From the NCBI GenBank assembly GCA_001179505.1, contig CDMY01000592.1, positions 186,001 to 250,000 of the forward strand: 64,000 nucleotides of DNA, written 5' to 3'. Of the stretch, positions 47 to 56,675 are shown in pieces. The notes under the pieces are model-generated. The model had not been told where the DNA came from and did no database searches. It saw only the letters and a list, made by a program, of their open reading frames with translations. A program made the position numbers and the translations under genes. The number at the start of each line of letters is the position of its first letter. Position 1 is the first letter of the stretch. Source of the stretch: Vitrella brassicaformis CCMP3155. Its lineage: Eukaryota > Protista > Chromerida.

Positions 47-3000
47 GCCGCCTTCGTGGCTGATGCCTTGCGCGTCATTCGCGGGTTGTATGCCGCTCGC
101 GGGAGGCCAGGGGTGAGGGTGACGGTGCTCGCACACTCAATGGGATCCCTAAGCGTCCTTAAGGTATACAGGTACGTACGTACGTATGTGTGCCGTACGT
201 AAGTATCCGCGGGCAGAGGCCGGCCGCCCATCTATCTGATCTGGGTGCTGTGCTGTGCTGGTTGGTGTGTTTTGTCAGGCGCTACAGGACCAGCCGGAGC
301 TCGTCGAGTCTTTGAGTGGTGTAGTGCTCCTCAATCCGCCGCTGTCGGGCCATCCGCTGCTCTTCGACCCGGCCTTGGTCACCCTCTTCAACTCGCTCTA
401 TGCTGGGGGGGGTGCAAGACCAGACAGGGATAGCGGGCAACCACCGCGACAGCTGCCTCTAGTGGTGCTGGCCTCGGGCATCAAGGATCGGTCGGTGCCG
501 CCCGAGAGCACCGTCGTCCCACACGTATGGAGGAGGACGAACGGATTGTTCAACCCCATCCACCACGTACGTAAGCAGTCAACTCCCACACACCACACCC
601 GTCGGGCGTCTAATGCTGCTTGCCAGCTGGCCAGCGAGTCCCTCAGGGGCCGGTGTGGTGTGACCTGGTGTCCGTCTGGTGGATGGATGGATGGATTGAT
701 GGGTGGGTGGGTGGGTGGGTGCAGGTGATGACATCTGACTTGTCCGACAGCCACGTGCTGTTAACACACGTCAACATCATCTTCGTCACGCCTCTTCTCC
801 GCCACTACTCCAACATTCTGCACCTGGTGGCTCGAGGCGAGGCGGACCGCCTCGCCGACTGCATGGACATCCAGCACACCCACCTTCCGCACATTAAAGC
901 ACTGAGATATGGGAGGTGGTGCGGATCCGGCGGGTGGGGTGAGGAGCCCTCTCCACACAAGGACCAAACGACCGGAGGCTCTCTGCCTTTGCTGTCACCT
1001 GGGCTGGCCGTGTGGGCGATGGATGGCGGCGTGCCTGTCACATTTGAGCACCATGTTAGCAACGGGACAGCCTTCTCGCTCGTCGTGAAGGAACCACCAG
1101 GTCAGCCATCTACCCAGCCGGGCAAGGGTGGAGCAACCGCAGCGTGTGTATGCCTCCATTGGCGTATGGTTGGTACCATGTGTGTGTCTCTGTCAGCTGA
1201 TGTCAACGCTTCTCTCGCTGAGGGCGGCACCGGGTCATTTCGGCCACGTGATCGAATGCGGTGCGACAGATACTTCCATGTGGCTTCGCAACCCAGCAAT
1301 CAAGGTATGGATGTATGCATATTCGGGCCGCTACAGCGCACCCGGCCGGCTGCTGGAGTAAAGTGCCTGTCTCCCTCCCTCCTCCCTGGTGTGGTGTCTT
1401 TCTTGTGTCCGACTTGCTCTCCAGTGTCTTGGTCGGTAGTGCGTCCCCTGAGCCGCTTTTATCCCTCCAAGATGTGCTGGTGGGCGGTCGAGGGCCCTGC
1501 CAACCTTCGTGTAACCCGACACAAGCATACCAGCCGGCCGCCGTCTTCGCAAGCCTGGATGGAGGAGAGCTGCAACACCCATACCAAGAGCAGTCACACG
1601 GGCAACAAGGGCTCCCACGGCGGCAGCGTGTGGCGGTGGCTGTGGTCTGCCATCTCCCCGCTGAAGATCAACGTGCCGCCTGGCAGAGCCGCCGTGGGTG
1701 TGCCTCTCCCGATCCCAGAGGGCATGGGGCATCTGCTGCCGTGCGACATCAGCCTGAATGTGGACGTGGCCTCAACCATCCAGCGTCGTGCCAATGGGAC
1801 CAATGTGACTGATGCCCTGGCTGCCGTCGCGGCGGGGCTGGTGCCGACACTCATGGCATGGGGACCATCCACTCTGGCCATTTTTCGACCGAGACACCTG
1901 CCTTTGACGAACGTGCCGCTGGAGCCTCATGGTGGGGTACATTTACCATCGATGTCGGCGGATCGTCACGGCATCCTGCAGCAAGGGAGGGCAAGGGGGA
2001 TGATGGATGCGGAGAGTGACCCAGATGTGTTCACACCGAGATTCCTGCCAGCAAACGGCACGTCTGCGGGCTACACGGTCGGCATCGTCAGGGACCCTCG
2101 TGTGGCTGTCAATCTTAAGATTTCTGCCAACTGGAGCACTTTTTGGACCGAGGTGGGGCGGCTCTACTTCCCCTACATTGCAGCTGCTGCTGTCGGCTAT
2201 CTGCTCCTACACACGGCATCGGTACGCACGCATGCCTCTGTCTGTCGTCGATTAATCGATCACCGCCTCCCTCACATGGGATGTGGTGGATGGTTGAATG
2301 GATGGACGGATGGATTTCTGCAGGCGGCGTACAGGGCGTTCTGCGTGAAGCCTCCGGATGCGCCGCGGGCAAGAAAGCCATTGCTTCAGTGGGCAGGGAA
2401 GTGGGCGGGGACCATAGTATGGGGGATGGCAAGCACCCAGCTCACGCACCTACTGCCCGTGATGGAATCAACTCTCGACAAGCCCCTCAGCAGCAACCTC
2501 TTCCGGCCGCCAAGCCCCCCCATTGCCCTCCTGGCCTTGCTTCACGCCCTCGGGGTGCTGCTCGCAAACTCTCTCATCGCTGTGTCGGAGCTGATACTTT
2601 GGATCGTCACGTCTCCCTGGTGCTGCCCGATGCCGGGGCGCTGCTGCCGCGCCTTGAGCTGGGTGATGGGGAAGCTCGTGGGGCCGGTATTGCTTTTGTT
2701 TCTTCTCTTGTTATCGCCCTCCATGGCTCTGCTGGGTGCCTTTGTCGCGACGCTGGCGGCCATGCATGCAACGGAGTCCAGGAGCGGCAGGTCCCCGGCC
2801 GTGGAGTGGCGACTTGGGCTGCTGGCTGGCGTCTTGTTTATGGTCGTGATGCGCATCCCAGCCCTGTCCTACACCTGGTGGCTTATGGCCTGCTGTCACC
2901 TGCGACCAGAAGACACACCGGTCAGTCAGGAAACACACACAATTGGCATGGGCGGAAACACAGACAGACAGACAGACAGGCAGACAGAACGGCAGATGTA

Positions 3001-3909
3001 CAGGCGAACCCATGCCGTTTGTGCGGGACCCAACCGATGTGCGAGTGTGTGTGTGTGTGTGTAATGTGTGTTTCAATGGTTAATCAGATGGATCTCCCGC
3101 CGCAGCAGTTCCGCACCTTGATGCGAGAGTCCCAGCACGAGCCTACCCTGCTATTCGAGTCGCCCTTTGTTCTCCGATACGCCCCACGTGGGGGAGGCGA
3201 CAAGCAGCTCGCCTTGACTTGGAATCTGCCATCCGCTCTTGAGCGGCTGGCAGGCCTCGAGGTGACGAGCACGGCCGAGAATGACAGCAGGTGGGCCGCT
3301 CACCTCACAGCCCTGGTGCCGTGTGCGGTCGCCCTTGTGCTGCTGGGGATGGGACGGACCCGACGCAGCGGCACTCAGCGACGCAAGACAGAGGGTGGAA
3401 ATGGCGCTCATGGTGGTGTTCCTTGCAGTGGTGAGGCTATTCGCGGCGGCGCAACGAGTGAGGGCGGTGCGGTACGGCATCGTGTTGCGGCGAGCGACAA
3501 GCGTCCAAACGATTCGGTTCACCAGCTGAAGTCGGCGTGTGTGGAAGGGCGGGATCTGCCATCGGAAGAGAGCTGCAGGGCTGAGAACTCTACCTACTGG
3601 CCTCTCACTGGGCTCCTCGCGCTACAGGTAGGTCCGTCGTGAACCAGAATCACAAACCCACTCGTTATCGATGGGTATGTATGTGTGACATGTCCCCACT
3701 TTGTATTTGTGGTGTCTGTCTGGGCGGTAATGGGTGCTTGTCTGCTGCAGGTCCTGGTGTCTGTGTGTGTCGTGTGGCTGACGCAACATTGTGGCTATCG
3801 GTGCATGCTGTGGCTTGAGCTGTCATGCGTCATGTGGGCGATGACGCTCTGGATGCGATGCGATGCGCACACTTTACTTCCAAGGATGAGTTCAATTCAC
3901 GATAGATAG
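47..3909 (+). CDS. PGAP1: GPI inositol-deacylase PGAP1/Bst1-like (alpha/beta hydrolase plus C-terminal TM helices); multi-exon, 5' end lies upstream of the window
   Basis: Exon 47-163 reads AAFVADALRVIRGLYAAR...VTVLAHSMGSLSVLK (GxSxG elbow in PGAP1 context). It is followed by VVLLNPP, VVLASGIKDRSVP (catalytic Asp region), a His-containing segment, and hydrophobic helices at about 2400-2900 and 3750-3909. Confidence 0.75.
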
Positions 3910-4208
3910 ATAGCTTCGTAAGTCAGCCGCCAAGACAGCATAGCATGCATTTCAGTCAGTCCGCATACGTATAGATCTATCATCCGCACTACACTACACC
4001 CACGCTTGGCCAGGCCACCGAACATTGATTGATTGGACGCATACCAACCTGTAGGACGATGAACAGACAGACAGACACGGATGCATTCATTCACTTATTG
4101 ATTGACTTGGACAAAAGACAGACCTAGGCTAGGCAGATGTGCGGATCTGTTCACTTCACGCCTGTGCCTGGTGAGACGGACGAGACCATGACATTGCCGC
4201 CCGACACG

Positions 4209-4749: not shown

Positions 4750-4933
4750 ACTGGCGGGGGAAATTGTTCCTCATGCGAGCTTCGATCGGCCCCCCACGGT
4801 GATTTTTCCCATGGCCGCATGGATTGCTGGGTTCGCCGACCTCCGCCGCGGGAACCAAGAGTCACATGAATGCATTACAGTTATCAGTAAACACATGCAC
4901 GGCACACATCCATGCAGAGAAGCCTTAATCAGG

Positions 4934-6816
<1,883 letters not shown>

Positions 6817-12195: not shown

Positions 12196-12393
12196 CCTGA
12201 CAAGGCCTGTAGATTCACTAGCTTGACTAGATTTTCACGCGAGAAGACATTTGTAGCTTAAAGCCCGCCGAATCCTGGCCGAAAGTAAAGAGCCTTTCAC
12301 AGAAAGCCTTTCACAGAAACCCTAACTCTGGTGTACGAGGCTGCGCTGACATATCCTCGCTCCTTCCCCATATCCCCATCGTCCCCATCGCCA

Positions 12394-14815
12394 ATGGCGA
12401 AAAAGGCAAAGTGGGACCCGGATCTCGAACCGTTTATGAGAGAAGTACTGCGTGGCGTTCGAGTTCGCCAAGCGGTCGAGGTCAGTGACACCTGTGGCCA
12501 TGCCGAGCAAGTTGTCAGTTTTAGGATCCTCCTCCAGGTCGGACGTCGGGCAGTGGACTATTTCAGAGGCCAAGAGTTCGTACGCTTCGTCCTCAAGGTA
12601 GCTGCAAACACATCGATTTCCAGATGCACGCATGTCATTCTGTCTTTGTGCACACACACGCTTTGTTGCTCAAGAACGCAGATATGCTTCGGAAGCGAGT
12701 ACGTCTGGCCACTCATACATAAGTGATGTGATGCGTTACCCCTTCTGTGTTTAAGCGACTCGTCGTCTCCTGCTGGTGCTGCCTCGCAACTACAGGCACC
12801 CAAGGCGTGCGATGGCATCGACCTCAAGGATGTGAAGGATGCTGAGAGGCTTGGCGATAGGCTCATCAAGCGCGGCTTCGTATACAGGTAAGCTTTGCTC
12901 ATTGCCTCTCAGTCAATTGATTATTCCATTCATTTCTTTCTGAATCAGGGCCCAGTAAGTCACGAATGATGTCCAGTAAGCCCGATCGATGATGAGTGAC
13001 CGTCTGATTTGTTTGTAGGTATAAGCCGGTAACCTCAAGAAGTCGTTGATTCATCAAACTTGGCTTGGCTAAATCACATCATCATTTCTCGAATTCCTAG
13101 ATGTCCAAGCCCTCCGAGGAGAATGCAAATGAGGGTAAGCCTAGTGGGACAGGCGCGTCCACATTAACCGATGGCGACACTTCTTCTTCCGTGTGTCCCC
13201 TCTGCTCAGCGGCTCGTCGTCCAAAGTGGCCAAAAAGGCTGATTGCGACCCAAAGGTTAGCATGGCGCGCTTCGGTCAATCAGCAAGACAAGACCTCTGT
13301 ATATGTTTCAGCCAACAGTTTGATGAATCCGCCTTCTTCATTGTCTTGTACGAGGTGGTTCAAAGCTGTCTTCTCTTCAACAATTCCACTGATCCTCTCT
13401 TCCTGCTTTGTTTAAGGGAAGCAAGGCCTGGTCGTACATTCTACTGACGCTAATCATTGGAGGAGTTCTGGTATCCCAACCCTTTTGTCCGGTCTCGACG
13501 AATTCTTGTCATTGAGTCTTGATGGTTGGTTTGTCGGCTCACAGGCCATGTGCCTCTTCCCCGCATGGCCACTCTCCATGAAGATAGGTGCGCATTTGAA
13601 TGACTAAGACAGCAGCAAAACCACGTTCCAAGCTTGCAGGGGTCTGGTACATTAGCGTCTTCTTCATGACGGCCATGGTACGACAAAAGCGAGATGGTTT
13701 TCGAAGCGAGATGATTTCCAAAGCGAGATCTGTTCGTCAACAGCTTCTTCTTGTGATCGGGCGATTGATCATCTTCGGACTTTTCTGGTTCATGGGCGTT
13801 GATTTCTGGATACTGCCCAGTAAGGAGTTATTTCAGAGCTCCCTTGACTTGATCCCTTCACCGCCATGATCTGTAATAACAGATCTATTCAACGAAGATG
13901 CTGGCGTTTTAGACTCCTTCATTCCCGCCTACTCGGTAGGTAGTAACGCATTGCAAGCCACATTTGAGGGGATCATTGCGTTCCGGGTCAGTTTGAGTAC
14001 AGGGCTGACGACTGGAAGATGTTTGCAATTCGGGTCTTCTGCTTCGTCTTGCTTTGTGGTCGGAACGGATCTCGTTTTCTGTCATTAGCGTGTTGGCATC
14101 CGTATCTCTTTTTTGCAGGGGGCTTGTATCAACTCAATCAAGTTCACTCGGTGGATGACATGAGGTATGAACCCGGCGCCAGCTTAAAGGAAAGGAGCAA
14201 CACACCGTAATTCATGTCATTTTTCCCTGTACCAGGAACTTCGCGGAGACGTGACCTAGGAAAAAGAAAGTTGACTGGAGGGTTCAATTGCGGTTTGTTT
14301 CTTCTCTTTTTTTTCACCGTCAGCTCATTCATTGACCTCCTTGAATGGGGAAAGAACAAGCTTGCCGCTCGTAAGAAACTTTCTTGATAAAATTGTTCAA
14401 TCAGATGCGTGTCGCGTTTTCGTTCAGCTCCCCAGCCAACACGGCGCTTTCCGTAAGGATTGGGTGGGTGAGCGGGTGAGTCTGGCAGGGCACCAGTGTT
14501 GCTAGGACCCTTCTCTTGCAGATCGCTTGACGAAATCTCGACGACGGAACATGACGACGCCCCTTCATCAGAGCCAACACCAAAACCTTTTGAGTGCCTT
14601 GCGCCCTGTGGAGTGGAGCCGGACGAGGACTTGCTGACATCGTGCAAAACCCTTACGGTCAGACGGTTGCGGTCTGGCGGACGGCAGAATCCTATTTCTG
14701 GGTTGTGCTGCAGGAGCTCGAAAAGACCTCGTGCTTCCGCAAATGCACCGACTCAGAGAAGGACAAGTTGACCGAGGCTCGTGTTCTGCAGTGTGTCAGC
14801 GAACAAGAGCTTTAA
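12394..14815 (+). CDS. SEC62: ER translocation protein Sec62, about 21 exons
   Basis: Spliced motifs GRRAVDYFRGQEF, LIKRGFVYRAQYKP, RRPKWPKRL, QQFDESAFFIVLYE, MCLFPAWP, GVWYISV, FWILPNLFNEDAGVLDSFIPAYS, DLLEWG. Confidence 0.92.
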
Positions 14816-14929
14816 GACGTATGTATCGCATATGTATCGCATACATGGTCACGTGCGTACTCTTCCGACGGAAAAGACTTTCTTTCCAATTGACATTTAC
14901 GAGAATCATCATGAAAGTCTATACAAGTG

Positions 14930-20486
<5,557 letters not shown>

Positions 20487-24232: not shown

Positions 24233-24303
24233 AAGCACGAGAGAAGAGCAATTTGGAGAAGAGTACGGTTTCGCTCAGGGTCTACTAGTAGCTCGCCTGG
24301 CCC

Positions 24304-27004: not shown

Positions 27005-29274
27005 CTAGCCTATGTTGACCATCTTGTTGCCGCTACCCTTCGGATGATCGTCCTACACACACAGACACACAGACACACATCCATACACCGAAACAGGGAG
27101 ATTCACCCCTTTACATACACCCATAGCGCTGAGCTAGTGAGTGAGACGGACACCACCCCTTGCCTGCCTCCCTACACGCACGCATGGCGTCTTGTCCCTC
27201 CCTCCCTCCCTGTCTCCCTCTCAGTGTAGTAGGCCATTCACCCCTACAGGTCTGTCTTACCTTCCAGTCGTCCCAGTCCCTGTCCTTTTTCTCCTGCTGT
27301 TCATCCACCCGGTCATCCTCCTCTTTGCCATGGTCGTTCCCACTGCCTTGAGCCGCAGCCCCCGTGTATGTTTGGACGATGTCGCCACCTGGCTGGGCGC
27401 CCATCTCATGCACCTCGATTGCCATCTCCATGTCGGCACACTGAGCCAATGATATCGTCGGCAAACCTGTCAACCAACACGGTCACATGCGGACAGACAG
27501 GCGACCAAGTAACTAATGGTGTGTGCCCCTGCCTCCCCTCCCCTCCCGTGCCGTGCCGTGCTAATGTAGTAGCGTACGGTGTGACGGTCTCAGTACCGCC
27601 TGCCGGTACAGCTGTCGCAACTCACTCGGCTGCCCCTGACATGACAGCAATCAATAAATCAGCCAGGCAGCAGGAAGATACAGACAGACAGACAGGGATT
27701 TTCATTCACTAGCTAGTGCACCGGCGGCCCCGGATCGGTCAGATGCAGTCTGTCTGTCTGTCTGTCTCTGTGCTTGCTTGAGGCGTGGCTGCACACCATG
27801 AGGCTTGCCAGCCCTGGGCGCTGCTGCGACGAGGCTGGCGCGGATCTTGTTGGTTCCTGCCTGTGTTGACGGGCCTCCTGGACCTGCCGGCGGTCAGCTA
27901 AGAAGCGCTCCAGCATCGGTAGCTCCTGCACAGAGACAACACAACACAACACAACCAGACAGACAGAGGGGTACAGCTGGCTGCACTGCACACTCTCTGG
28001 GGGGCCGGGCCCTTCAGTCAGTCAGTCACCCGTCTTATTTGCTCGACCTCCGCCATGGCGGCCGCCGCAGATCTGACAGTAAGCCAGCCATTTCAATGAG
28101 TCAGTCAGCCAGGCAGCGAGCCAGCCATCGGTCCCATCTGTGTTGTGCACGTCCGTCTGCCTGCGTGCGGGTGTGGGTGTGGGGTGCCTCACTCACCTCT
28201 CGAGAAGGGACACAAGAAGCAGCCGTTCATTTTCCTCGTCGACAGACTGCACAAAACAATGAATCAATGACACAGACAGCAATCCAATCCCGTCCGTCGA
28301 CCGCACCGACCAACATCCTGTGTGGCTGTGACGAGATCGGGTGGCTTGCCTTGCCCCAGTCGTGTTCGTCGCGTTCCCCGTGCGGGTCGGCCACCTTCTC
28401 CCTCGCCGTGCGCTGACGTAACGCAAACAAACGCTGATCGATCGCCCAGCCAGCCGAAAATGCGGTGACCACACCCGTGGGTACATACAGACAGACAGAC
28501 ATGCAGACAGTCAGACAGTCAGTCAGACAGCCACCCACCCATCCATCCAAGTGGAATGCACGCAAACATCGCTGCCGGAAGCGTATACCTGTATCCGTGA
28601 ATCGAGCTCCTTCTGCTGCCGATAGCGTTCAATCCTCCTGGTCCTGGAAGGAAACACAAGAGCAGTCGGACAGACAGACAGACAGACAGGCAGACTGACA
28701 GGTATCAAGGGAGGCGTACGTACGTGATTTCCCGCCCCACCTGTCTGTTGCTGGGTCAGGGCGCGCCGGGTGAGGACCTTCTGGCTCCTCCTCATTGTCG
28801 GCGCTTTGCAGCCACTGATCCACACCACCCACACCCAAACTCTGCATCCTTGCCAGAAAGCGATGGAAATACACCTGTGGCGCAGACAGACAGACACGCC
28901 AGTCAGTCAACCGATGAATCAGGTCGACTTGGTGTTGCATTCTTCATAGGAATGTGACGTACGAGTGCGTCGTTGAGTGCATCGAGTCGGTCGTCCACAT
29001 GAGTGACTTTGGTGGACAGGTCGCCCAGCACGAAAGGCACCATGAGGTACTTGAGGGATGCCGTACTGATGTCGTCCAGCTCCTCGTTGTCCGACACGAC
29101 ATCCAGCCCTTCTGCCATCGCCGCCACTTGCCGGAACCGGGCCACCAGGCCCTCCAGACACTCGACACCAGATACACCAGGTTGATCTGTGACCGGCACA
29201 CCACCCGACAGGCTGCTGTAGGCCGACAGGTACTCTGTGAAGGCCGCGTTAAATGTAGCGCTCAACTCGTTCAT
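27005..29274 (-). CDS. TAP42: TAP42/IGBP1 (alpha4) PP2A-family regulatory protein
   Basis: VSDNEELDDISTASLKYLMVPFVLG, RTRRIERYRQQKEL, PTISL, KDRDWDDWK|DDHPKGSGNK. Confidence 0.92.
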
Positions 29275-34723: not shown

Positions 34724-36278
34724 TCAGAGTTCGTCGTGGTATGTGCTGCCAGCGCCCTTTTGGGGTTTGCCGAGAGCCCACATTTGTGATATCTTGCCGG
34801 CGTCATCGAAGGTTGTGACGACCAGGTGGTTCTCAATCGACAGGCTCTTGTCGGGCTTCATCAGGTGAAACGCCTGCTTGTGCACCACAGTCTTCAAATC
34901 AGAACCAACCTGCATGCACCGCACCACCACATAGTCACACACACATTCGATTCCCTACACTTGCAATGCTGGTTGCCTGGCCCGAAGTGGCTCTAGTGCG
35001 CGGGAGTGTGTCTGTGTGTGTGTGTTTGTGTATGTGTGTGGTACCGTACCAGCAGCAAGGTGGGAGCGCTTGCGAACCGTCGCGTGTCCTTGTGCTCAGC
35101 ATACTTCTTGTAGAAGGCAATGTGCTCAGCGTGACCTGACACATCCATACAAACAAACATGGCCGTGCGCATCCATCCATCCGTCGATTCCCCGGCCCGG
35201 TGTCATCTGTCTGTCTGGTGGGTGACCTTTGATGGGGGCTGATGACCAGTAGGTGTGAGTGACGGCGTCGGCTGCGAAGAACTCGGGCACGAAAGTCTCA
35301 GGCGAGGTGATGTTGAAGTGCAGGGCGTCGAAGAACTTGCCCATGCGGCTCATCTGCAGCTTCTTCATCGCCGTCTCCTGCGGTAGGTACACGAGGGCAC
35401 ATGGGTTCGTACACACACACACGGATGGATGGATGGATGGATGTCTTGTGGTGTGGTGGATGGACTGACTGGTTGGCTGACCGTTTCGGTGGCGGATGGT
35501 TTCTCGAAGGAGTATTTGCAGAGGGCCTGGTCGATCATTTCTGTCTTGCTGGTCATGATGACCGACTTCATCGACTCGATAGTCGGCTTGTCCTCGTCCG
35601 TCAGACGCATCAACCGAAGCATGTACCACGTCGCCGGACACGGCAGCTGCGTACCCTGTGATGATGGCATGGGATGGGATGGAACCGAACACACCAGCCA
35701 ACCAAGGCTCGGCACACATACATACAAGAGGCTCAGCCAGATGGTAAACCACAGCCTGTACGTGTGGTGTGTGTACGTACCTTGGCGACATAGATCTGCA
35801 GGTGGCCGACGGTTCTGAAGTCGCTGAGGAAGAAAAAGTCACTGTCCCGCGCAATGGCGACGCTCTCCATCTGCTCGTAGCGCGGCGACAGGACGCTCTT
35901 CCAGAAGGCCTTGCCCTTTCCCCGGTGCGTCACATCGCCGTCCGTGTACTCGATCTCTGATTTGTCCGTCACGCGAGTTAGCACCGCCTCCATCGCTTCC
36001 ATGGGCGTCTTGCGGCTGTTGAAATCCACCAGCAGCTCTGATGGAATAATGAGTGAGTGAGTCCATACACACATAGCATACACACAGCAAACACGCAAAC
36101 CGCAGGATAAGCAAGCGACACGACGGAAGCCGCCATCCCCCTCTGTGTGCGCGTGTGTCTGTCAGTCAGTCCCCCGCTCACCGTCGTGCCATGCAGCCGC
36201 CGCCTGGGGCGTCAGGGCCTGGCTGCCCACCACCACACATGCCACCACCACCAATACAGATGCGAAGCGGGACGCCAT
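34724..36278 (-). CDS. Signal-peptide protein with probable tandem SnoaL/NTF2-like domains ending in HDEL
   Basis: First exon MASRFASVLVVVACVVVGSQALTPQAAAAWHD. FVPEFFAADAVTHTYWSSAPIKG and LVVTTFDDAGKISQMW resemble SnoaL-like patterns. The stop follows ...STYHDEL. Confidence 0.7.
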
Positions 36279-36422
36279 TCTTCGGGATTGCAGGCACCTT
36301 CCTCACTCACACTCGACCTTCGGAGGTGAATGCAGCTGCAAAAAAGCCACGGAAGACGGAGATCTCTCAGGCCTTTCTGCAAGCTTAGCTCGCAATGGCG
36401 CAAAGGGTTTGATGCCAGCAGC
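36279..36422. promoter_or_regulatory. Probable bidirectional promoter between the HDEL protein gene (-) and OPRT (+)
   Basis: Divergent ATGs 144 bp apart. Positional inference only. Confidence 0.4.
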
Positions 36423-37169: not shown

Positions 37170-37624
37170 CCAACGCAGGCAGGCAGGCAGGCGATCGAAT
37201 CAATGAAAATGGACGCCATTGACTGGGGATGGGATGGGCGATTGGTTATGAGGGGGTCCTGTCCGCCGCTTCTATCTACCACAGTACATACCTCAATCAG
37301 GTGTCCGCCAGAACAGAGAGAGAGCTTGTGTCTGTCCGGTGTGCGTGTTGGTGGTTGGCACATAGGTAGGCAGGTAGGTAGGTAGGTAGGTAGATGTCAG
37401 TCGGATCCACTAACATATTTGTAGCTGCGACTCCATCTTCCCATTGCAATGACTGCCCGTGTGTACGACACTATCGCGAATATTCATGTGAGTGAGCCAT
37501 GTGAGTGAGCATGGACGTCACGTCATGCCCAATTAAGTCGTGGTCTGTCCTCCGGTGCATGGCATCAAAAGACCCTGAACCACTGGCGCGAAACGGAAAT
37601 TCGGCCCGGGGGCAGGGAAGAAAG

Positions 37625-40600
37625 ATGGAGAGTTCCGACGCAGCGGAGCCTGAGAGGACCTTCAAGACAGACCTGTAGCCACATTCAGACACAGATCTTC
37701 ATCCCTTCTCAACGTGTTGCCTTTCGTGTGCACGTGTGGTGTGTGTCTGTGTCCACAGTTGGGATGGGTTTGAGTGTGTGTGCAAGAAGGTTGAGTCGGG
37801 TCGGCGGCTGTGCGAGACGTTCCTGACCATCATGCGCGACAGGATGGCCCTCGAGGACACATACGCGGCCGGCATGGAGAGACTCGCTGCCAAGTGCCCC
37901 AAACACATCAATGAGGGCAGGTCAGTCAGTCAGTCAGTGACTGCTGTGCTGCCCACACACACGTCTGCACAGCAGCCACGGCAGACACACAGACACCACA
38001 GACAGACAGACAGACAGGGAAGAAGCCGAGACCTGTATGTATGTATGTCATTCAATGATGTGTGTGGTTCTATGGTTGGTGTGAGTGCAGCACTGTGCTC
38101 CGTGCTATTGGGTGTTTCCGCAACGAGGCCATCCGAAAGTAAGTAGGGGGAAGCAACCAAAACAGACAGGGAGGCAAACAAGCGGGATGGATGGATGCCA
38201 GGCGGCGGTGTTGTGTGTGTATGTGTCAGGGCCGAGCAGAGCCGTGAGTTGGCAGAGGGCATTCGGGATGATATAGTGCAGCAGCTGCAGGAAACTGTCA
38301 AGAACCACCAAACCGTATTCAAGAAGGTGACCGACTGACGCACACACAGGCAGTGCAGTGCATTCACAGCATACACAGCTGGGCGTGTGCATATCTGTGT
38401 ATGTGTTCATGTAGATCTACAGCGATGGGGTCAAGTTCATCAAGCTCATGAACGGACACATACAAACACACGAACGGGTGAGCATCAGCATAGCGGGAAG
38501 GGGGTGTGGGGGTGTGGGTGTCAAGGCGACGGAGGGAGGCCAAGCCAGGCAGGCAGGCAGGCACATCGATAGACACATGTATGGATGGATGGATGTATGT
38601 ACACACACACGTGTCGTGTGGTGTGGTGTCTGTCTGTCTGTCTGTCTGTCTGTCCTTGTGTGTGTGTGCCAGGCAATGCTGCGTTACGAGAAGACCTGCA
38701 GGGAGGCAGACGCTACCTGCATGGTAGGGATGGATGGTTGGTACACACAGGCACACACACACATCCGTCCTTGGACAACACCTGCTTCCCTGCCCTGCCT
38801 CCCTCCCCCCCACCCTCCCTGCCTGCCTCCGTCCCATGTCTGTCTGTCTGTCTGTCTGTCCAGAATGCGCAGGCTAGTGACCGCTCACCGCCGCCCCTCA
38901 AGACCAAACTGGCCATCAAGTCAGTCAGACACACAGACAGACAGACAGACAGACGGACAGCCACCGGTGTTTTGTGAGTGCCCCATCGCTCACTCCCTCC
39001 CTCCCTCGTCATGGCAGGGCACTGCAGCTGTGCAAGGAGGCCCAGATAGCAGAGGAGCAGTATAGACATGCCCTCGACGTACACACACACACACACACCC
39101 CACATACACACATACGTACGTACGCGGATGGCCTCTGCGTCTGTGTGGGTGTCTGATAGGCGCTCAACAACGGCCGTCGGACGTTCCGCCACCAAATGGT
39201 CAGTCAACGAGGGAGGGAGGGAGGGAGGGACAGAGAGAGAGGGAGGCGGCCGGCTACGGTGTCTGTCTGGACGAACGATGTCATTCACGTTGACGACGCC
39301 TGTGACTGTGTTCCTGTTGTGTTGTATGGTATGCAGACTGTGGTGCTTGACGCGCTGCAAGATATGGAGGAGAAGCGCATCCAGTGCTTCAAAGACGCAC
39401 TCAGGAAACTCATGGTAGCAGGCACACGCACACAGAAGGCACATAGCGTGACTGACCACTGGTCATCGATTTGGCGCGCGCATTTGTCGATATCAGGTGT
39501 ACCAGACGTCTTACGTCCGCAATATCCAATACGACCTCGACATCACCATAGAGGTCACCACAACCACCATGTTGTGTGTTGTGACCTTTTCCTCCCTCCC
39601 TCCCTCCCTCCCTGTCTGTTTGTCTGTATTTGTCTGTCAGGGTGTGGAGGCGATCGACCCCCGTGCAGAGATCTGTGAGTACATCGACAAAGTGGCCAGC
39701 GGCAGGCAGCCGCCACACGACAGCAACATGGTATGGTATAGACGGACGGACGGACCCACACAAACAGGACGGCGGAAATAGATTTCAGGTGCCCATGTGT
39801 CTGTGTCTGTGTGTGTGTGTGTGTGTGTGCAGCTGCCGTGGCCGGTCATCACCGAGTGGCGTGTCCGCAAGGCGGGTGGTGATTTGCTGGCGGCCGGTGT
39901 GGCGCCCTCCACCCTCCCATCGTCCATGAAGCACCTGCTGGCCCCTCCTGTGCCATCCCCACCCATACCCACGACGACCACACCACCAGTGGGCACACAG
40001 ACCCCCGCGGTGGACCCCCACACCACACAAACAGATGCCAATGCCGCACCCGATGCCGCCAGTGAGGCATTCAGCGACCTGGCCGACCCCGCCACCAAAC
40101 CCAAGCCAGCAGAGGAGGGGGACGAGCCGCAAGATCAGCAGCAGCAGCCGCGGCAGCATCCCCAGGACCCCGCGGTCGACCACTCGACTGCGTGTGACGA
40201 CTCAGCGGCCGTCAGTGCGGAAGCCGACTCGCATCATGGGGCGGGTGAGAGCGGGGCCGGTAGGGAGGATGGTGGTGGCATTAGTAGCGCATCGCCTGCC
40301 CCTCCGCCCCCGCCGCCGGCCAGTGAGGTGCCCAACCATGTGGCAGTGCCGCCACCGCCACCCCCTCGACCACAACAGGGGGCACCTGCCGCCGCCGCTG
40401 CTGCTGTCGGTGGTGTTGAGCGTCCGTCGGTGTTTCCGGCCAACTTCAACCCTGCCGCCACGGCCAACATGCTCAGACACATCACCAGGTGGGCAGACAG
40501 ACAGGGAGACAGGGAGGCCGAGTGGCATATGTGTCCTGCGTCAGGACCACTGGATTGGACAGGCTGGCCGATTCAGCTGCAGCACTGGTACACACTCATA

Positions 40601-46135: not shown

Positions 46136-49100
46136 ATGACGGTATCCATTAGCTCCACCCTGTTGCTGCTGGCTGGCATCCTGCTGGCGTCCACCCTCCT
46201 GTCCTTCCCCCTCGCACACGCCGACCAAGTCGCCGAAGAGGCCGCCGACGGACCTGACAGGCGGACCCGCAGGAGCGGCAGGGTGTCGAAGCCGTCGACG
46301 CCATATGATCGGCCAGGGGCAGCAAAGGGGAAGAGAGGCAAGCTCACCGCCGAAAAAGCACGCCTCGCACTCGAATCAGTTGGGATGGAAGCACCCGAGG
46401 CGGCGGCGGGTGCCGGGGCCGCACCGTCGGATAGAATTCCACCCCGCGGTACGCACGACACACCACGCCATGCATATCATACGCACGTGTGTATGTATGC
46501 GTGGGTTGCCTGGCGCAACGCGGACCTTCCATGGATTGGCTGACTGACGCACGGACGAATGGACACATGGATGGATGGATGGATGGATGGATGTGCAGAG
46601 CAGTGCCTGATAATTACGTGTTCGTTCTGGCTGGTGCATGAATTCATGCCCCATCACTCACTCACTCTTTGGCTCCCTGTCTGTGTGTGCGTGTGTGTGT
46701 GTGTTTGGCAGATGAGTGCCCCAAGGTCGACCCTGGTGCCATGGGGACTGGAGTTCACCTGGCGCCGCGTTCAGATGGCTCAATGCCCTTCACCATCTTC
46801 CACTGGGTACACATGCATGCATTGCATGGATGAATGGCATCCCATCCCACAAGGCAGGTGGGGTGCACCGTGCACCATCCTATTACCTGGCCTGGTGTTA
46901 TCATACCTATTTGTTGGCTGACCTGACTGGCCATATGCGCACATCCATCCTCACACCCATCCATCCATCCATCCACCGGTATATGTCTGTGTGTGTGCAT
47001 TATACGTCAGAATTTGGATTGGATGTTTTCACCCAATGCCCCGCGCGCCGAGTGGGCCAGGAGTCGTTACGAGGGTCGTGAGAAGGAGGACCTCATCAAG
47101 GAGTGCCCACAGAGGTGGGAGCCGGGCGAAGAGTGCGACCACTTAGATTTCAGCCAAGAGCTCGGTATGTCAACACACACCACACACACACACACACACA
47201 GGGGCAGACACTGAGGTTTTCTCCCGTCCGCTGTGTATGTATGTATGTGTGTGTGTGCATCGTGCGTCCATCTGTCTGTTTGCTTGTCTGTGTGTGTCAG
47301 AGTGGCCGTCTGGATACTCTTTCAAGTGGACGCCCGGCGAAACGGGCCGGCCGGAGACGGAGCGTTCCACGCCCTGCACCGGGATGAGGGTGCCGGGCGC
47401 CGGTCTGATGCACCCCTGCATGAAGCAGTGGGGCCGCATCAAGGCCACCGGCATGTGGATCCGCTGGCTCTGGCAGCAATACCAACCCAACGTCATCAGC
47501 CTCAACGAGGTTCGTAAGCTACAGAGCCACTCAGGGTGGGCCACGTGGGGTGTCGTGGGGCGATCCATTGATGGTGATGGGTGGGTGGGATGGACGGATG
47601 GACCATAGATAGACCCATGGATGGATGGATGGATGGATGGACGGACCAATCAACCAGCCACTCACTTCTTTCTGTCTGTCTGTCTGTGTGTGTGTGTGTG
47701 TCTGTGGTGCAGATCGACGGGTGCACCACGTTGAAGAATCTGCTGGAGGCCTCCGGGCTCAACAACCCCCAGCTGACGGGGCCAGGGGTCTTCTGGCCGT
47801 ACCACTACATGGGCAATGACTACCGCAGCAACCAGCAGGTCGGTTTCCTCACCAACCTGCTCCCAGAGACACATGCAAACGAACTAGCCGCGCAATTCTA
47901 TTAAGAACAGCACACAGGACACTAACGGACAGACAGACAGACAGACAGACATGGGGAGAGGGACAGGGAGAGAGGGAGAGGAGAGGGTATGCATCACTGT
48001 CTGTTTTTCTGTCTGTCTGTCTGTCTTTCTGTGTGTGTCTATCTATCTATCAGCCACAAGGGTGTGGATACCAGCGATTTCCCTGTGACGAGCAACAAGG
48101 AGTGCCAGCAGTACTCTGGTCACGAGCGCGGCAAGGACTACAACTTCAAGAAGCAAGGAGCCATTGGCCTCAACAAGAACGTCATGTTGGGCGTCGACGT
48201 ATACGGCCGCAAAATCGCCCTCCTTACCGTGCACCTCAAATCCATCCCCAACGGTAAGACAGACAGACAGACAGACAGGGACAGTGGATCTATCTGTTCT
48301 GTGTCACCCACCGGTGGGTGTGTCGTGACGCCACCTTTACATCCATCCGTTGGTGGCTGGGGTGGCTGGGGTGGCTGCAGCGCCGGCCAACTGCATGTAT
48401 CGAGAGGTGGAGGCCAAACTGATTGACCAACTTATCACGTAGGCACCGTCCCTAGCGCGGCACACGACCGCCAATCCCACCCCCCACCCCCCACCCCCCG
48501 CCCCACCCCACCATCTCTCTCTCTCTCTGTCTGCGTGGTGTGTGTGGGTGGTGCCCGCCTGCCTGCCTGTCTGTCTGTCTGTCTGTCTGTACAGTTCGGA
48601 GATCCCTGAGGGTTACGAGATCATCCTCTTGGGTGACTTCAACGACTACGACGACAAGGACCCGCTGACGCGCGACATGCGCCGCGTCCAACGGGAGGGC
48701 CGCTTCTTCCAGCACCCCAATTCCCCCCCCGACCCCGCACTCGACCCAGGCAAGCCCGACACGCCCTACATGGACTCGACGCAGGACACATCCGTGAAGG
48801 GCAGGGGACCAGCCAACTTCGACGACCACAGCAAGGCGGAAGAGCTGGACGCCGAGGACGAGAGAGAGTACTACCGTCTGGTATCGGCGGATCAGGAGGA
48901 GTCGCAGATGTTCGTGGAGCTCGAGGCCAACACGACACAGGAAGAGTGCGAGGAGGGTGAGGGTGGCGAGGGGTGCGCCCTGATGGGGTCGTCGTTCCTC
49001 GAGACCGATGAAGGGCCCCCGCCCCCCGGCGACGAGGACATGGAGGTGACCGGGGTTCAGCAGGTTCAGCCCAAGAAGAAGCGCGCACCGCCCAGCGTTG

Positions 49101-50194
49101 ACCTCTACGCCAACAGCTGGGTCTTCCAAATGATCAAACACGGCTGGCCCTTGTGAGGCGAGCCACAAACATACACACATCCATGCACACATGACCCGTA
49201 TGTGTGTGTGTATTTGGCGAGCACTTGTACATGCATGTCTCCTTGTGTGTGTGTGTGTGTGTGTGTCCCCCTGCATGTCTGTCTGGCTGCAGCGGGCCCG
49301 GCCGCCATGGGCATCGTCACAACACGAAGAGGGAGATGTTCAACACCAATATGGCCCTGTCGCAGGACAAGCGCTGGTCTCTCGAGTTCATGAAAGCAAG
49401 CCAAACCCGTGCGGGGCAGGTCATTGCGTGGCTGCCCCAGCCATTCATACGTTCATACATACATGCGATGGTTTGTCAATGTCAATGTCAATGCAGGTCA
49501 AGACGCAGATCGACTTCATATTCGTATCAAGGGTGCGGTGCTATATCAGTGGCCCACACCCACACCCACCCACGCACACAGACGCATTCATCCATGTCTC
49601 TCTCCCTCCCTCCCTCCCTCCCTCTCTCCCTCCGTGTGTGTGTTTTCAGGACTTGTTTCACTGCTTGAAGACCTTCAAGATCCTCAACCCAGACATGGCG
49701 AGCGACCCCGACATGGCGAGCAACCCCGACAAGCCATACTTCACCAGCTACGGCGCCAGCAAGGGCTTCAAGGGCGAGTAAGGCGCACACACGCCACACA
49801 GAGACACAGAGCTTGCTTACCCACGTGTGTGTGTGTATGTATGTATGTACTGTGTGTATGTATGTATGTGTATGTATGTGTGTGTATGTGTGTGTGTGTG
49901 TGTGTGTGTAGGGACCCGTCGGACCATTTCCCTGTCGTCGGTGAGCAGCACATAGCACACACAGACACACATATATCAATCGCATCGCTGCACATATACA
50001 CAATGAATGAATGGACGCGTGACGTCCCGCCATGCGAGTTGTCTGTGTGTCTGTCCTGTGTGTCAGCGCATTTCGACTTCAAGTTGGGCGGGTGCGATGC
50101 CATGGCGGGACCGTCGGGCGCTTACTACAGAGAGGCCGGGCGGGTCTGCAACATGGGCGGCAGGGAGGTGCCCTGTAGCATGGCCAAAGAATAA
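46136..50194 (+). CDS. Secreted endonuclease/exonuclease/phosphatase (EEP) family protein
   Basis: Signal peptide MTVSISSTLLLLAGILLASTLLSFPLAHA. EEP motifs HW|NLDW, PNVISLNE|IDGC, VHLKS, CMYREVEA, IILLGDFND, QIDFIF, DPSDHFPV. Confidence 0.9.
47165..47300 (+). repeat. Intron with a 5' (AC)n tract and 3' (TG)n/(TGTA)n tracts; representative complementary-microsatellite intron
   Basis: gtatgtcaacacacaccacacacacacacacacac ... ctgtgtatgtatgtatgtgtgtgtgtgc ... tgtgtgtgtcag. Confidence 0.9.
47901..48053 (+). repeat. Intron with (GACA)n near the 5' end and complementary (TGTC)n near the 3' end
   Basis: gacagacagacagacagacagac at about 47928-47950; ctgtctgtctgtctgtc at about 48009-48025. Confidence 0.85.
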
Positions 50195-51331: not shown

Positions 51332-54300
51332 CTATGGCCTTTCCCCCTCAGCGCCATTGCTGCTGTCCGACGCAGACGACCCGTTGACGTGGGTGGCCGC
51401 CACGCCGTTGCCCGCCTGCTGCTGGTGGAGGTGGTGGTCGCCGCAGGGTGTGGATGCGGGTGAGAGGCCCCGCGAGCGCGATGATGTGTTTGATGGCGAC
51501 AGGGCGAGTGAGTCGACAGAGGGGGGACGGGGGCGCAGCCGGGCGGGTCTCTCACTGTCACTGTCCAGGTCCAGCTCCTCGAGGTCAGCGATGAGCTCCT
51601 CATCCTCCTTGTCGGACTCGGAGTGGCGGTCATTTGGGTGTGGTGGTGCTGGTGAAGCGTTGCTGTCACTGCCGTGTGACGGCCTCGGTGGTCCTTCCGG
51701 TGCGTGCGATGCGGATGCGACAGGACTCGCCCTCAGCGAGGGGCCTTCAATGGCGTCCACGTAACGCTCCTTGATCCCCCTCCCAGGGATGCCTGCTCGT
51801 ACGTACGTACGTACACATGGATGGATACATACACGTGTCTGTGAGTCATGTGTGTCGTGTCTTGTTGTGTCGTGTGTGAGAGTGTGAGAGTGTGTGCAGG
51901 CAGCCGGCGCGTACCGTTGCACACGAGATCGTCCGGATTGAAGACCTTGATGCAGGGAATCCGCCACTCCTGCACAAGCACAAAAACACACGTACACTGA
52001 CCGACTGACTGTGGCAGGCTGACTTTGCTGGCCAACTGCACCAGCATCAGTGACTGCATGGGTGCATGTGTATGCGTACCGTTCCGGATGCGTGTAGCTG
52101 TGCTGGTCCGGGTGTGTCGTCGCGCACAGTGAGCATGCGGAAGCACGGGTCCAGGATGGCCAGCCACGACTGCCGCTGCTGGCTCACGCCCTGCTGACCC
52201 TGCAGCTGCTCACGCAACCTGAAGAATACGACGACGCATACGCATACACAGACATAACGAGGGAGATATCCGCGGGCAGGCGGGAGGGTGGGTGGGGGAC
52301 GTACGCTGTAAGCCAGACATTGTCACTGTTGTAGACTGCCAAGAGAAAGACACCCGCGTCGCTATCCATGCACAAAGCCAACCTAAACGAAGAACGGACC
52401 GGACCCACCACAGACCGACCGGCAAAGAGGCGTCGGCGGGATCGTGTGGGCTCATGTGGTGAGTACTGACTGACATGGGGTTCAGGATCATTTTGGCTTC
52501 GATCTCTATGGGGATCAGGTAACGCGCAACCACAACGGTCGACGGATTGTCGCCCTCCCTGCAGCCAGCCAGCCAGCCAATGCACACATGCTCACAGAAT
52601 GTTCGTGCTTCGGTTGTCGCCCGCCTCTCTCTGTCGTCAGTTTCTTCCTCCTTCCCTCCCCCACTCCCTCCCTCCCTCCCTGGCTGGGATACCTGAGTGT
52701 CTTATAGCCCATCTGTGTGACCTGCCCCTTATTATTCCCTCCCTCCCCCTCCCCGTCCCTGTCGGTGCTGTCCCCGCCCCCCACCCCGTTGGCCGGCGAC
52801 CCATCTGTGGACTCCCCCATGCCCACGTCCTGCCCGTCGTGGTGCGAGCTGGCCGTGCTGCCGCTGCTGGGAGAGGCGTCGGGGCTCACACGCGACGCAC
52901 CCTCGCCATCCATGGTTGTGGTGCCCAGCGGTCGCGAGGCCACCTTATTCACATCACTCGTGGTGGTGGTGATGGCAGGTGTCTTGGTGTTGCCGGGCCG
53001 TGGGGGCTTCCCTCTGCCCCTGCCGCTTGTGGCCGTGGCGGTCGCTGTCGCTGTTGGTGTGCGTGATTGGGTGCTGGTGGTGGCGCCGGCACGTGTGACG
53101 GCAGTGGGTCTAAATTTGAGCGGCAGTCTCGGAACGACGCTTTGCTTGATGACTCGGAGGGAATCGCCCACTTGGCGGGCCTTCAGCCGACACTGCATAC
53201 AATACACCGTGATAGTAGGCGAAGTGCACAGACAGACGCACGTGAAGTGTATATCAATCACCACCTTGTTTTTGATTTGTGTGCCGATCTTGGTAAGCAG
53301 TCTCGCGTGTTGCTGGTAGAGCGCGTCGGCACCGGCATAGGGGTCGATGACGTGACACTGCACACCCACACGTGTACAGACGGGCAGGGCGATACCCGTC
53401 CACTCATTCTATTGTGTGTGTGGTGTGTGTACCCTTTTCCAAGCTTCGATGGCCCCGTTGTAGTCCAGCAGGTATCGGTAAGCCTCGGCCCTGTTGAGCC
53501 AGATGTCGGGGTACTCATGGCCGAGCTTGCCAAACAGCATCTCCTACACACACAGATACATCATCACTGCATTTCGTGGATGCCGGTGGCTTGCTTGTTT
53601 GCTCGTGTGCGTACCGCTCGTGTGAATGCCTTGAGTGCCCTCTCCATGGACGTCCTCAGGGCGGCCTCCGACTGCACCTTGGTCATGGTCGCCTCCATCA
53701 AATACGAGTTGCCTGAGAAAACTGCACACACTCCCACACATGACAAATCGATCGTCCCTCTGAGCGAGTGGAATGTTGTATGCATTGCCACTTACACCAT
53801 GAGAAGGGGTCGTCTAGGTTGAGTGCGAGTGCCTGTTTGGTCAGTGCAAACGACTTGTGCATGTTCTCATGTCGCTCGGGGCTGTTGCCTGTCATGTCAG
53901 GATGCAGTCAGTGCGATTTGCATCAACACACACGAGAAAAGACAAGGAGGGAGATACACCAGTAGGATGACGTGCAGGTGTGTGCTGGTTGGTTACCCTC
54001 TCCTATCGTCCTCATGACCACAGCGAGGTACCGCAGCGGCTTAGCGTCACTAGAGTCCTGATGCACACACACACATACCGACCCGTTATTTTGTGGCGTT
54101 TGTTATGTTGCTCTTTCCTTCCTCCTGGCTGACCAGTTTGATAGCCCTTTCTAGGCAGTCCCTGGCCTTGAGCATATCCCTCTTCTTGGCATACGTGTGG
54201 CCCAAAGACGTCCACGCATCACACAAACACGGATCCAACTTAACCTGACAGACAGATCATCCACACGTGTACGGTGTACAGACAGATACACTCCCACATC

Positions 54301-54961: not shown

Positions 54962-55019
54962 CCCGAAGCGAGCCACACAGCACGGATTGTTTGTGCCGGG
55001 TACAGACAAGCTATTTGCA

Positions 55020-56675
55020 ATGAGGTTTGTTTCATAGCTGACTCTCTCACTTGGTATCGTTCCCCACCATCAGCGTGGGAGAGGCCGGTGCTGTGCTACT
55101 TTCCCCCCAAGGACCGGGCCATCTACACCGCTCTTGCCGCCACGAGGCCAAGGAAACCATCTCTGCTCACCGAGGAGCGCTCCAAGCTGTCCACATACAT
55201 TCGTGATGTATGTAGGCCAGCCACGCGCCTCCGTATCCGTCCATCGGTCCTTCCTTGCCTTTGCGTGTCGTGTGTGTGCAGATCAACAATGCTGTGCATC
55301 CTCCTGACTACATTCGCCCTCCAGCCCGTGAGCCGGCTCCACAACTCGACGAAGGGCCTCAGACAACAACCACCGCCACCGCAGCCCAAGACAGCCAGGC
55401 CGGACTGCCCCGCATTCGTGCCTCGACTGCCCCACCCGGCGGCCAGCGCAAATCGAGCGAGGGTGTGGGGAGGGCACGTGAGAGCGTGTTGATCTATCCC
55501 ACTGGTGGTGAGAGGCCGGCCAGTCTCCAGGGCGTGGCTACGAGGGCGATGCTGCAGCATCGACAGGCGGTGGAAGTCGAGAAGGCCACCAAGAAGTGGA
55601 TGAGTGAGTCGCATCGGGTGACCAAGGCCGTTTTTGACCAGGGGAGGCACGTCCCTTGGCCGAGGTCAGCTCATGCAAACACGCGGAGGATGAACGATGC
55701 ACTCATGTCAGCGGTCAGTTGGTCGGTCGGCCGGTCGCTGTGTCAGGTACAAGCTGCCGACGTATCAGCCGGCGCCCCTGCCGACGTGCCTGGCCCGAAC
55801 GGTTCCCCAAAGCCAATACACCATGGGTACTGAATCACTGGATTACACTGTCATCGATGCACTTGTCCAACAAAACATCAGAGTTTGGCAACTACGGATC
55901 GAATCCCCGTGACAGGGTAGGTCTGCACAGCATCCATAAGCAGACACAGGCTGTTAGTGTCGAAGTCTGATGTCCCCTGTTGATATGATTGGCAGCTGTC
56001 GTACTATGCGACGTTGCTGCCTAAGAGGAGGGACGAAGTGACGTAAGAGATGAAGAGAATCAAGCGAGACATGTATGTCTGTATCTTGTGCGGGGGTCGG
56101 TTGACAAGCAGCATCGGCACAACGAAAGCCACCCTGCACATACCAGGATACTCAGTATGAGATCGATCATCTGTCTGTAGTACATGGATGTGCATGATGC
56201 TCGTGTCTTGTGTGTTCCCTGGCTGTAGGGGTTCTTGTCGTCAAGTGCCAAGCGACTGCGTGACCCGCCTACACCTGTCCCACGTTCTCTGCTCCGCAAT
56301 AGGGACAACCTTGTGGAGAACTAGTACGTACAGGAAGGGACATGAACAAACGGAATACGCACTGGCTGTCCTGGTCATCTACTGCACCGATTGGCAGCTC
56401 ACATTTTTTGCCGAAGTACACTGGCTATCAGCCAACAGCCGCCCAAAACGACAGGGGGTACACAGCAGACAGCCACGCGACATCCACAAACGTCAATATA
56501 CATGCCCGAACGCCCTGTCTGTCTGTCTGTCTGTCTGTCTGCCTTTCATTCTGTCCGTGTGGCGTGCTTGGTCTACGACAGCCCCCCCCAGCCCACGGCA
56601 GCCACGACCTCGGGTTATGCAGCGCAGGAACCGTACCGTGTCATGCTCAAAATCAAGGACGCCCAGACCAACTGA
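55020..56675 (+). CDS. Hypothetical protein with PGY(S/T)G-type repeats; ciliary microtubule-inner-protein-like (FAM166/CIMIP2-type PYG repeats)
   Basis: Spliced segments EFGNYGSNPRDR, GTTKATLHIPGYS|GFLSS, LPKYTGYQP. First exons are uncertain. Confidence 0.55.

Follow-up and report, generated by a model that had tools for sequence, protein, structure and literature searches.

The introns of the alveolate alga Vitrella brassicaformis CCMP3155 frequently begin with AC-type and end with GT-type simple repeats, as seen in the 64,000-nucleotide stretch analysed here (positions 186001-250000 of contig C592, hereafter the window), and this raises the question of whether the two ends of an intron are selected to pair with each other. 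A sequence-only reading of the window had proposed that they are, and that matched repeats of several alphabets bridge the intron as a hairpin and so define it. The explanation that probably holds is a different one, in which two compositional zones, each anchored to its own splice site, are independent of each other and the complementarity of the repeats is a by-product.

The assembly used comprises 72,700,666 bp in 1064 scaffolds (PMC4501334). Intron statistics rest on 264 kb, made up of the window, 150 kb of contig C98 and 50 kb of contig C77; results described as genome-wide are pattern counts over the whole genome. Introns were called with a gene-structure caller of our own, which combines a 3-periodic third-order Markov coding model with GT-to-AG intron jumps and short splice-site matrices and was trained iteratively; simple codon log-odds were too weak for exon calling, and the Markov model was used instead. 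The caller contains no model of the intron interior, so that repeats were not selected for directly. One called intron that ran across the assembly gap at 30850-31149 was dropped, and all N-containing sequence was excluded from the statistics. In the 264 kb, 459 N-free introns were called (median length 101 nt), and 381 of these passed stricter filters.

Independent support for a part of these calls was obtained from sequencing runs. RNA-like contigs of runs X1, X2 and X8 and contigs of the DNA run X3 were compared over positions 34600-40500. The RNA-like contigs of the three runs skip five minus-strand intervals with CT..AC ends, equivalent to GT..AG on the minus strand (Table 1). None of the five skips occurs in the X3 contigs, which run unbroken through the three introns that they cover fully and, in the other two, are interrupted at the repeats alone. 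Because the RNA-like contigs skip these intervals and the DNA run does not, the five are genuine introns; the caller placed four of them exactly and the fifth within 9 nt.

The polarity described by the sequence-only reading was confirmed. At all fourteen places that it named, AC and CA dominate the 5' half and GT and TG the 3' half on the gene strand; at nine of the fourteen, GT and AG stand exactly at the ends proposed, the remainder being a few bases off or approximate. The exact 11-nt inverted pair that it had picked out was recovered at 589-599 and 652-662. Within the window, (AC)n and (GT)n runs of at least four units are about tenfold commoner than AG, CT or AT runs, and in its 93 called introns AC runs are divided 37:14 between the 5' and 3' halves (p=0.002) and GT runs 21:68 (p=6e-7). 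Over all called introns, counts by quintile from 5' to 3' are 35/43/15/11/9 for sense AC runs and 18/17/24/62/118 for sense GT runs.

An AC-then-GT arrangement is its own reverse complement, so its order can be counted without knowledge of gene strands. Counted in this way, (AC)6-N30-60-(GT)6 has 2526 occurrences against 176 for the reversed order, and the polarity thus holds genome-wide. In the 264 kb, the distance between neighbouring tracts is most often 20-80 nt in the order AC>GT and 100-300 nt in the order GT>AC, which fits introns that open with AC, close with GT and are separated by short exons. With a loose tract definition (any A/C or G/T run of 8-12 nt, distances to 300 nt) no polarity was found, because distances of 100-300 nt are occupied by GT..AC pairs that span a short exon. 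Far from being equally frequent in intergenic DNA, the arrangement is specific to introns: the density of AC/GT runs is 5.1/kb in introns, 1.6/kb outside called genes and 0.2/kb in exons, and outside called genes there is no short-range order preference (4 vs 6).

The same polarity is followed by several repeat types, as had also been suggested from the sequence, namely AC/GT, AG/CT and GACA/TGTC. In the called introns AC (122:19) and AG (30:10) prefer the 5' arm, and GT (197:39) and CT (39:13) the 3' arm. Genome-wide, AG..CT was found 90 times against 12 for the reversed order, and the non-complementary combinations AC..CT plus AG..GT 1210 times against 91, a 13-fold polarity. Since the non-complementary pairs are equally polar, the shared rule is that the A-bearing strand is placed 5' and the T-bearing strand 3'; the ends look complementary because a repeat in one orientation is the reverse complement of the same repeat in the other.

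For comparison with fish, introns were scored by the rule applied there, ACACAC within 50 nt of the 5' splice site together with GTGTGT within 50 nt of the 3' splice site (PMC4691745). By this rule 72 of the 459 called introns (15.7%) and 67 of the 381 high-confidence introns (17.6%) are of the fish type, and 2 of the 459 show the reverse arrangement; the ratio of fish-type to reverse-type introns is 14 vs 1 in the window and 58 vs 1 in the independent 200 kb. Taken singly, ACACAC is present no more than 50 nt from the donor in 27-29% of called introns, and GTGTGT occurs at up to the same distance from the acceptor in 52-55%. Of the 40 nt at either intron end, tandem repeats of period 2-5 account for 37% on the 5' side and 45% on the 3' side.

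The 3' ends are, as had been described, rich in TG and not in pyrimidines: between -25 and -6 the base frequencies are 0.40 for T, 0.34-0.38 for G, 0.16-0.17 for C and 0.07-0.11 for A. Over the wider interval from -40 to -6, A drops to 0.07-0.15 while T rises to 0.32-0.40 and G to 0.28-0.38, and C has its minimum (0.16-0.17) at -20..-6. The median distance from the end of a GT run to the acceptor is 9 nt, with a first quartile of 3 nt. The nearest AG upstream of the acceptor is a median of 48 nt away; AG occurs in the 3' zone at 0.43 of the frequency expected from composition and is 4.7-fold rarer in the last 40 nt than in the 5' halves. What characterizes a polypyrimidine surrogate was therefore found, a U-rich, A-poor tract directly upstream of the acceptor with no intervening AG. 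Within the 3' zone, a high GT content goes with a low CT content (rho -0.365), which is what one would expect if the two are interchangeable occupants of a single slot. In 119 of 337 introns a GT run is present and an AC run absent; lone 3' tracts had been noticed in the window, and their frequency fits the fallback idea put forward at that time, that the 3' tract acts by itself. No clear branch-point consensus was found by k-mer enrichment in the last 45 nt of called introns. Inspection for U2AF65 and SF1, which had been advised, found a U2AF large-subunit-like gene on contig C201 (two exons scoring 167.7 and 74.6 bits, which does not reach the whole-protein cut-off) and an SF1-like gene on contig C607 (67.9 bits).

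At the other end of the intron, the sense strand from +6 to +40 has A at 0.27-0.31, C at 0.28-0.31 and T at 0.14-0.21, and AC runs start at a median of 18.5 nt from the donor. Donor strength and 5' AC content show a weak inverse relation (rho -0.15, p=0.005). Both zones persist when tandem repeats are masked (5' zone, A 0.27/T 0.19; 3' zone, A 0.145/T 0.315), and the 3' zone of the 37 introns that lack such runs altogether still has A at 0.14 and T at 0.36. In introns of at least 160 nt each zone reaches only about 40 nt inwards from its intron end and the sequence between them is neutral, which excludes a uniform transcription-coupled strand bias.

These compositional data bear on the possibility that the repeats are neutral passengers, only negative constraints (no AG and few A near the acceptor, a U-poor sense strand near the donor) being at work and a high rate of AC/GT slippage filling the rest. 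The depletion of AG to 0.43 of expectation and the 48-nt exclusion zone would follow from such constraints, yet the 3' zone is positively U-rich (0.35-0.40) and not merely A-poor, even where repeats are absent, and GT runs end right at the acceptor. The tracts are short (median 8-9 nt) and variable, tandem repeats account for 37-45% of the zones, and T in the 5' zone (0.15) is close to that of exons (0.16-0.18), all as passengers would have it; against this, the 5' zone is anchored to the intron end, with a neutral middle in long introns and no uniform strand skew, and the inverse relation of donor strength to 5' AC content hints at compensation. On balance we consider it rather improbable that negative constraints suffice.

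Hairpin-bridged intron definition as in teleosts, in which the tracts would pair, join the splice sites and make splicing less dependent on U2AF65, if only in some introns of intermediate length, is also unlikely to explain the arrangement. It is invited by the frequency of fish-type introns (15-18%, against at most 2.3% in fish; PMC4691745). The matched alphabets foreseen by the sequence-only reading were not borne out, however: in co-occurrence, content, tract lengths, partner permutation and type matching, the two ends of an intron are approximately independent. Among called introns no excess of co-occurrence beyond independence, rising with tract length, was found. The odds ratio for the co-occurrence of 5' AC and 3' GT was 1.43 (confidence interval 0.94-2.17) with 6-mers, 0.85-0.92 with 8-mers and 1.10 in the 162 most confident introns. 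There was no correlation between 5' AC content and 3' GT content (rho -0.014), nor between tract lengths in annotation-free AC>GT pairs (rho 0.08 and -0.13), and the majority of introns with a GT tract have no AC tract.

Permutation of partners gave the same result. The best duplex between the arms of the same intron (-21.50 kcal/mol) did not differ from that between arms of different introns (-21.13 kcal/mol); after removal of each arm's own propensity the difference was -0.38 +/- 0.35 (p=0.47), and in introns with full 50-nt arms it was -0.18 +/- 0.60. Any 5' arm combined with any 3' arm gave -24.8 kcal/mol, little more stable than shuffled arms (-23.3) and less stable than pairs of random exons (-26.1); complementarity at the class level is slight.

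Repeat types are likewise combined without regard to their partner, non-complementary combinations being as polar as complementary ones. The local table of AC or AG by GT or CT (78/14/19/3) shows no matching (odds ratio 0.88). Genome-wide, the product 2526 x 90, set against the product of the two cross classes (a x b, with a+b=1210), implies an odds ratio of about 0.6-1, and cross pairs are as frequent as independence predicts. For GACA/TGTC, 234 matched and 1455 crossed pairs give an odds ratio of at least 1.1, from counts that are overdispersed.

Whole introns fold slightly better than dinucleotide shuffles (mean z -0.58). For introns with both tracts the mean z is -1.12 and the share of base pairs that bridge the ends is 52%, compared with 31-38% in the remaining introns, which speaks for hairpins; high end-bridging in introns with both tracts nevertheless follows by construction. 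Six of the introns named by the sequence-only reading were folded, and a bridging stem is present in the minimum-energy folds of four. The stability against dinucleotide shuffles that pairing had led one to look for was clear in only one of them, 34910..35049 (z -3.49). The others were 49778..49911 (z -1.94), 39731..39832 (z -0.74, with a bridging stem), 36038..36181 (z +0.40), 47165..47300 (z +0.42, the fold joining both ends) and 35378..35481 (z +1.51, no stable fold against the shuffles). Bridging hairpins can thus form in about one fifth of introns, and there is no sign of selection for them.

Several observations weigh against the independence of two zones, or against the signal character of one of them. 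In introns of 100-160 nt the co-occurrence odds ratio is 3.1 (p=0.01), and in window introns of at least 100 nt it is 5.9 (p=0.015), both after post hoc length splits. These values probably explain why the sequence-only reading saw pairs in "many longer introns". Such subgroup signals are inconsistent between regions (1.7 in C98, 0.5 in C77, and 0.6 in introns of at least 160 nt), the content correlation is near zero, and false calls without either tract would also inflate them. Genome-wide, the ratio of AC..GT to cross pairs rises from 2.1 at 30-60 nt spacing to 2.9 at 60-90 nt, as hairpins would predict; the counts at 60-90 nt (956 AC..GT, 330 cross and 38 AG..CT) give an odds ratio of at least 1.3, a noisy value that comes from just about 13 AG..CT loci. 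All genome-wide counts are inflated by repeat registers and overdispersed (534 vs 921 on the two strands), and bound the odds ratio roughly. As to the calls themselves, up to about 20% of the introns may be false, because the caller made 87 calls on a reversed-sequence decoy against 414 on the real sequence; false calls raise the co-occurrence odds ratio, and the easier detection of repeat-rich introns lowers it. The 5' zone differs just mildly from exon composition, and the case for regarding it as a signal is less strong than for the 3' zone. Finally, that either zone promotes splicing, and that factors bind them, we infer from sequence.

A third source of complementary ends was considered. 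Inverted-repeat ends are typical of DNA transposons, and introner elements occur in other protists; a mobile element with inverted terminal repeats could therefore have given rise to these introns. All-against-all BLAST of the 459 introns with a low-complexity filter returned just repeat-like matches of 21-48 nt and no family, the ends are simple repeats of many types and lengths, and transposable elements total just about 1.5 Mb in Vitrella (PMC4501334). Introner or transposon origin was rejected, since the 459 introns share no similarity beyond simple repeats, and we give it hardly any credence.

Under the favoured explanation of two separately anchored zones, the 3' zone (the last approximately 40 nt, as a rule stopping a few bases short of the acceptor; U/G-rich, A-poor and nearly AG-free) would do the work of a polypyrimidine tract and an AG-exclusion zone combined. 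It could be built from (GU)n, (CU)n, (UGUC)n and similar repeats, and may be read by a U2AF65-like factor or another U/G-binding protein. The 5' zone (about +7 to +40; A/C-rich and U-poor) might serve as a CA-type intronic enhancer or as a stretch kept free of decoy U/G tracts, the inverse relation between donor strength and AC content being the sole hint of such a role. Di- and tetranucleotide microsatellites, which make up 37-45% of the zones, presumably arise easily, and each repeat class would persist just in the tolerated orientation, with the A-bearing strand 5' and the T-bearing strand 3'. A bolder combination has a low probability: that 3' splice-site recognition has been re-tooled genome-wide around a U/G tract and that, in addition, pairing of the tracts helps introns of 100-160 nt, making this an independent protist origin of the fish-type intron. 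If that were true, the re-tooled 3' recognition would call either for a U2AF65 whose specificity has changed or for some other U/G-binding factor. For chromerids, gene finders should include both zones in their models. A transfection protocol is reported for the related alga Chromera (PMC12407925), and reporter tests are therefore conceivable.

The introns and other features of the window are collected in Table 1. In the first of them the caller chose the GT at 567 by reading frame, in place of the 571 given earlier; the 5' half of this intron contains 16 AC and 9 GT dinucleotides and its 3' half 2 AC and 31 GT. The corresponding counts for 2921..3087 are AC 30/GT 6 and AC 7/GT 33. In the region of 37921..38090, record 19 of RNA contig X8 places 52 nt between the exons 37759-37916 and 38230-38324; an exon sequence of about 52 nt (at least one small exon) within 37917-38230 was thus missed by the caller, which merged two introns into one call of 309 nt. 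At 34910..35049 the RNA-like contigs stop at 34907 and continue after about 140 nt. The joint at 35136..35226 is 35130>35222 (cut +5) in X1, X2 and X8, and the X3 contig is unbroken there. For 35656..35780 the joint is 35654>35780 (cut +1), and the acceptor chosen by the caller is 9 nt off.

Table 1. Introns, neighbouring gene and assembly gaps in the window (positions are those of the window; repeats are given in the direction of the gene unless otherwise indicated)
Feature	Positions	Strand	Repeats and other characters	Basis
Intron	567..724	+	CACACCACACC run near 5' end; GGTGTGGTGTG and (GGAT)n/(GGGT)n in 3' half	Model intron
Intron	2921..3087	+	(AC)n and (GACA)n in 5' part; (GT)9 in 3' part	Model intron
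Part of longer called intron 27441-27796	27660..27800	-	AC-then-GT order; boundaries provisional	Caller and counts
Introns skipped by RNA	~34908-35047, 35136-35226, 35378-35481, 35656-35780, 36038-36181	-		RNA-like contigs
Intron	34910..35049	-	Long AC tract after donor; (GT)n/GGTGGTG before acceptor	RNA-supported, model intron
Intron	35136..35226	-	(GACA)n after donor; TGTTTGTTTGTATGGATGTGTCAG-type 3' end	RNA-supported
Intron	35378..35481	-	CCACCACACCACA and (ATCC)n in 5' part and middle; (GT)6 in 3' part	RNA joint
Intron	35656..35780	-	ACACACACCACAC after donor; GT-rich stretches in 3' half	RNA-supported
Intron (5' untranslated region or first)	36038..36181	-	GACTGACTGACAGACACAC at 5' end; GT-rich 3' end	Skipped by X2 record 6
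Orotate phosphoribosyltransferase gene	36423-37169	+	Complete, single-exon	Pfam Pribosyltran, 50 bits
Fish-type intron	37921..38090	+		RNA contig X8, caller, dinucleotide counts
Intron	39731..39832	+	(GACG)n and ACACAAACA at 5' end; (GT)11 abuts acceptor	Model intron
Intron	47165..47300	+	30-nt AC-type tract 5'; GT/TGTC tracts 3'	Model intron and counts
Intron	49778..49911	+	AC-type 5' part; long GT/GTAT 3' part	Caller, counts and fold
Intron	49941..50066	+	5' half AC-rich; 3' half GT-rich	Caller and counts
Short intron, 75 nt	53358..53432	-	Plus-strand reading: CACACCCACAC-type run at low end, (TG)n run at high end	Model intron and counts
Assembly gaps	5103-5402, 30850-31149, 57008-57307		300 N

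Tetranucleotide repeats occupy opposite parts of two of these introns, (GGAT)n/(GGGT)n the 3' half at 670-721 (plus strand) and the complementary (ATCC)n the 5' part and middle at 35420-35445 (minus strand), so that a C-to-G switch accompanies the A-to-T switch along the introns. Three short stretches (37175-37192, 37921-37938 and 37998-38017) were covered in all four runs at a depth of 20-100x that of their surroundings, with many false joints; they consist of simple-repeat words, (GACA)n among them, which are shared by a very large number of the genome's contigs. The public-run contigs are also interrupted at AC/GT tracts, as at 34996-35043 and at 35405-35450. On contig C176, three near-identical GACA..TGTC intron-like stretches (12341-12424, 19903-19986 and 102563-102638) were found, one of them in opposite orientation, which suggests a recently duplicated gene family whose introns were copied with their repeats.

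The window has a G+C content of about 56% and three assembly gaps. None of the listed introns reaches those at 5103-5402 and 30850-31149, the distance to the closest one being about 2 kb, and the gap at 57008-57307 sits just beyond the range of the repeat-bearing introns. The orotate phosphoribosyltransferase gene lies among intron-rich genes and encodes the only complete single-exon protein of the window. Its named nearest relatives are gammaproteobacterial orotate phosphoribosyltransferases (54-62% identity), save for one fungal record (Gonapodya). No recognisable Chromera orthologue was found in the search, in which the closest matches were mostly bacterial, and the gene looks to be of bacterial ancestry.

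Polar (AC)m-(GT)n structured introns have been described in teleosts and lamprey, where they form a rare class that depends on structure, with a frequency in fish of 0.09-2.29% by the same rule (Lin et al., 2016, Genome Res, PMC4691745). In a literature search the pattern was found described neither in alveolates nor in other protists, and the genome paper (PMC4501334) is silent on intron repeats. Its occurrence in a free-living relative of apicomplexan parasites, at about seven times the highest fish frequency, appears to be new. As in teleosts and lamprey, AC lies just after the 5' site and GT just before the 3' site, within 50 nt, a bridging stem is possible, and the GT tract occupies the position of the polypyrimidine tract. 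Unlike these vertebrates, Vitrella is an alveolate alga, its introns are very short (median about 100 nt), AG/CT and GACA/TGTC share the polarity, and 15-18% of introns have both tracts and about 52% the GT tract, so that over half carry a GU-type tract in the polypyrimidine position; the co-enrichment of AC and GT across one intron, which defines the vertebrate case, is not seen among the called introns. A caution for the fish case follows, in that polarity and complementarity can arise without selection for pairing. Two end-anchored composition rules that filter the orientation of microsatellites suffice, and the fish data ought to be tested against this null model as well.

A GT-repeat tract is also known to support splicing at a 3' splice site in the human apoA-II gene, whose (GT)16 tract is cited to that effect in PMC4691745. 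Vitrella resembles apoA-II in having a (GU)n run directly upstream of the acceptor AG of a spliced intron; what is a curiosity of a single gene in human is here, as known from sequence, the majority state of introns. For the 5' zone, the likeness is to the intronic CA-repeat and CA-rich splicing enhancers of mammals, which are reportedly bound by hnRNP L, in work ascribed to Hui et al. of 2003 and 2005: Vitrella has CA-rich sequence downstream of the 5' splice site, with a weak inverse relation to donor strength. An AG-exclusion zone between the branch point and the 3' splice site is a general spliceosomal feature. Vitrella departs from the general case in that nearly all A is removed from this zone, which is filled with U and G rather than with pyrimidines.

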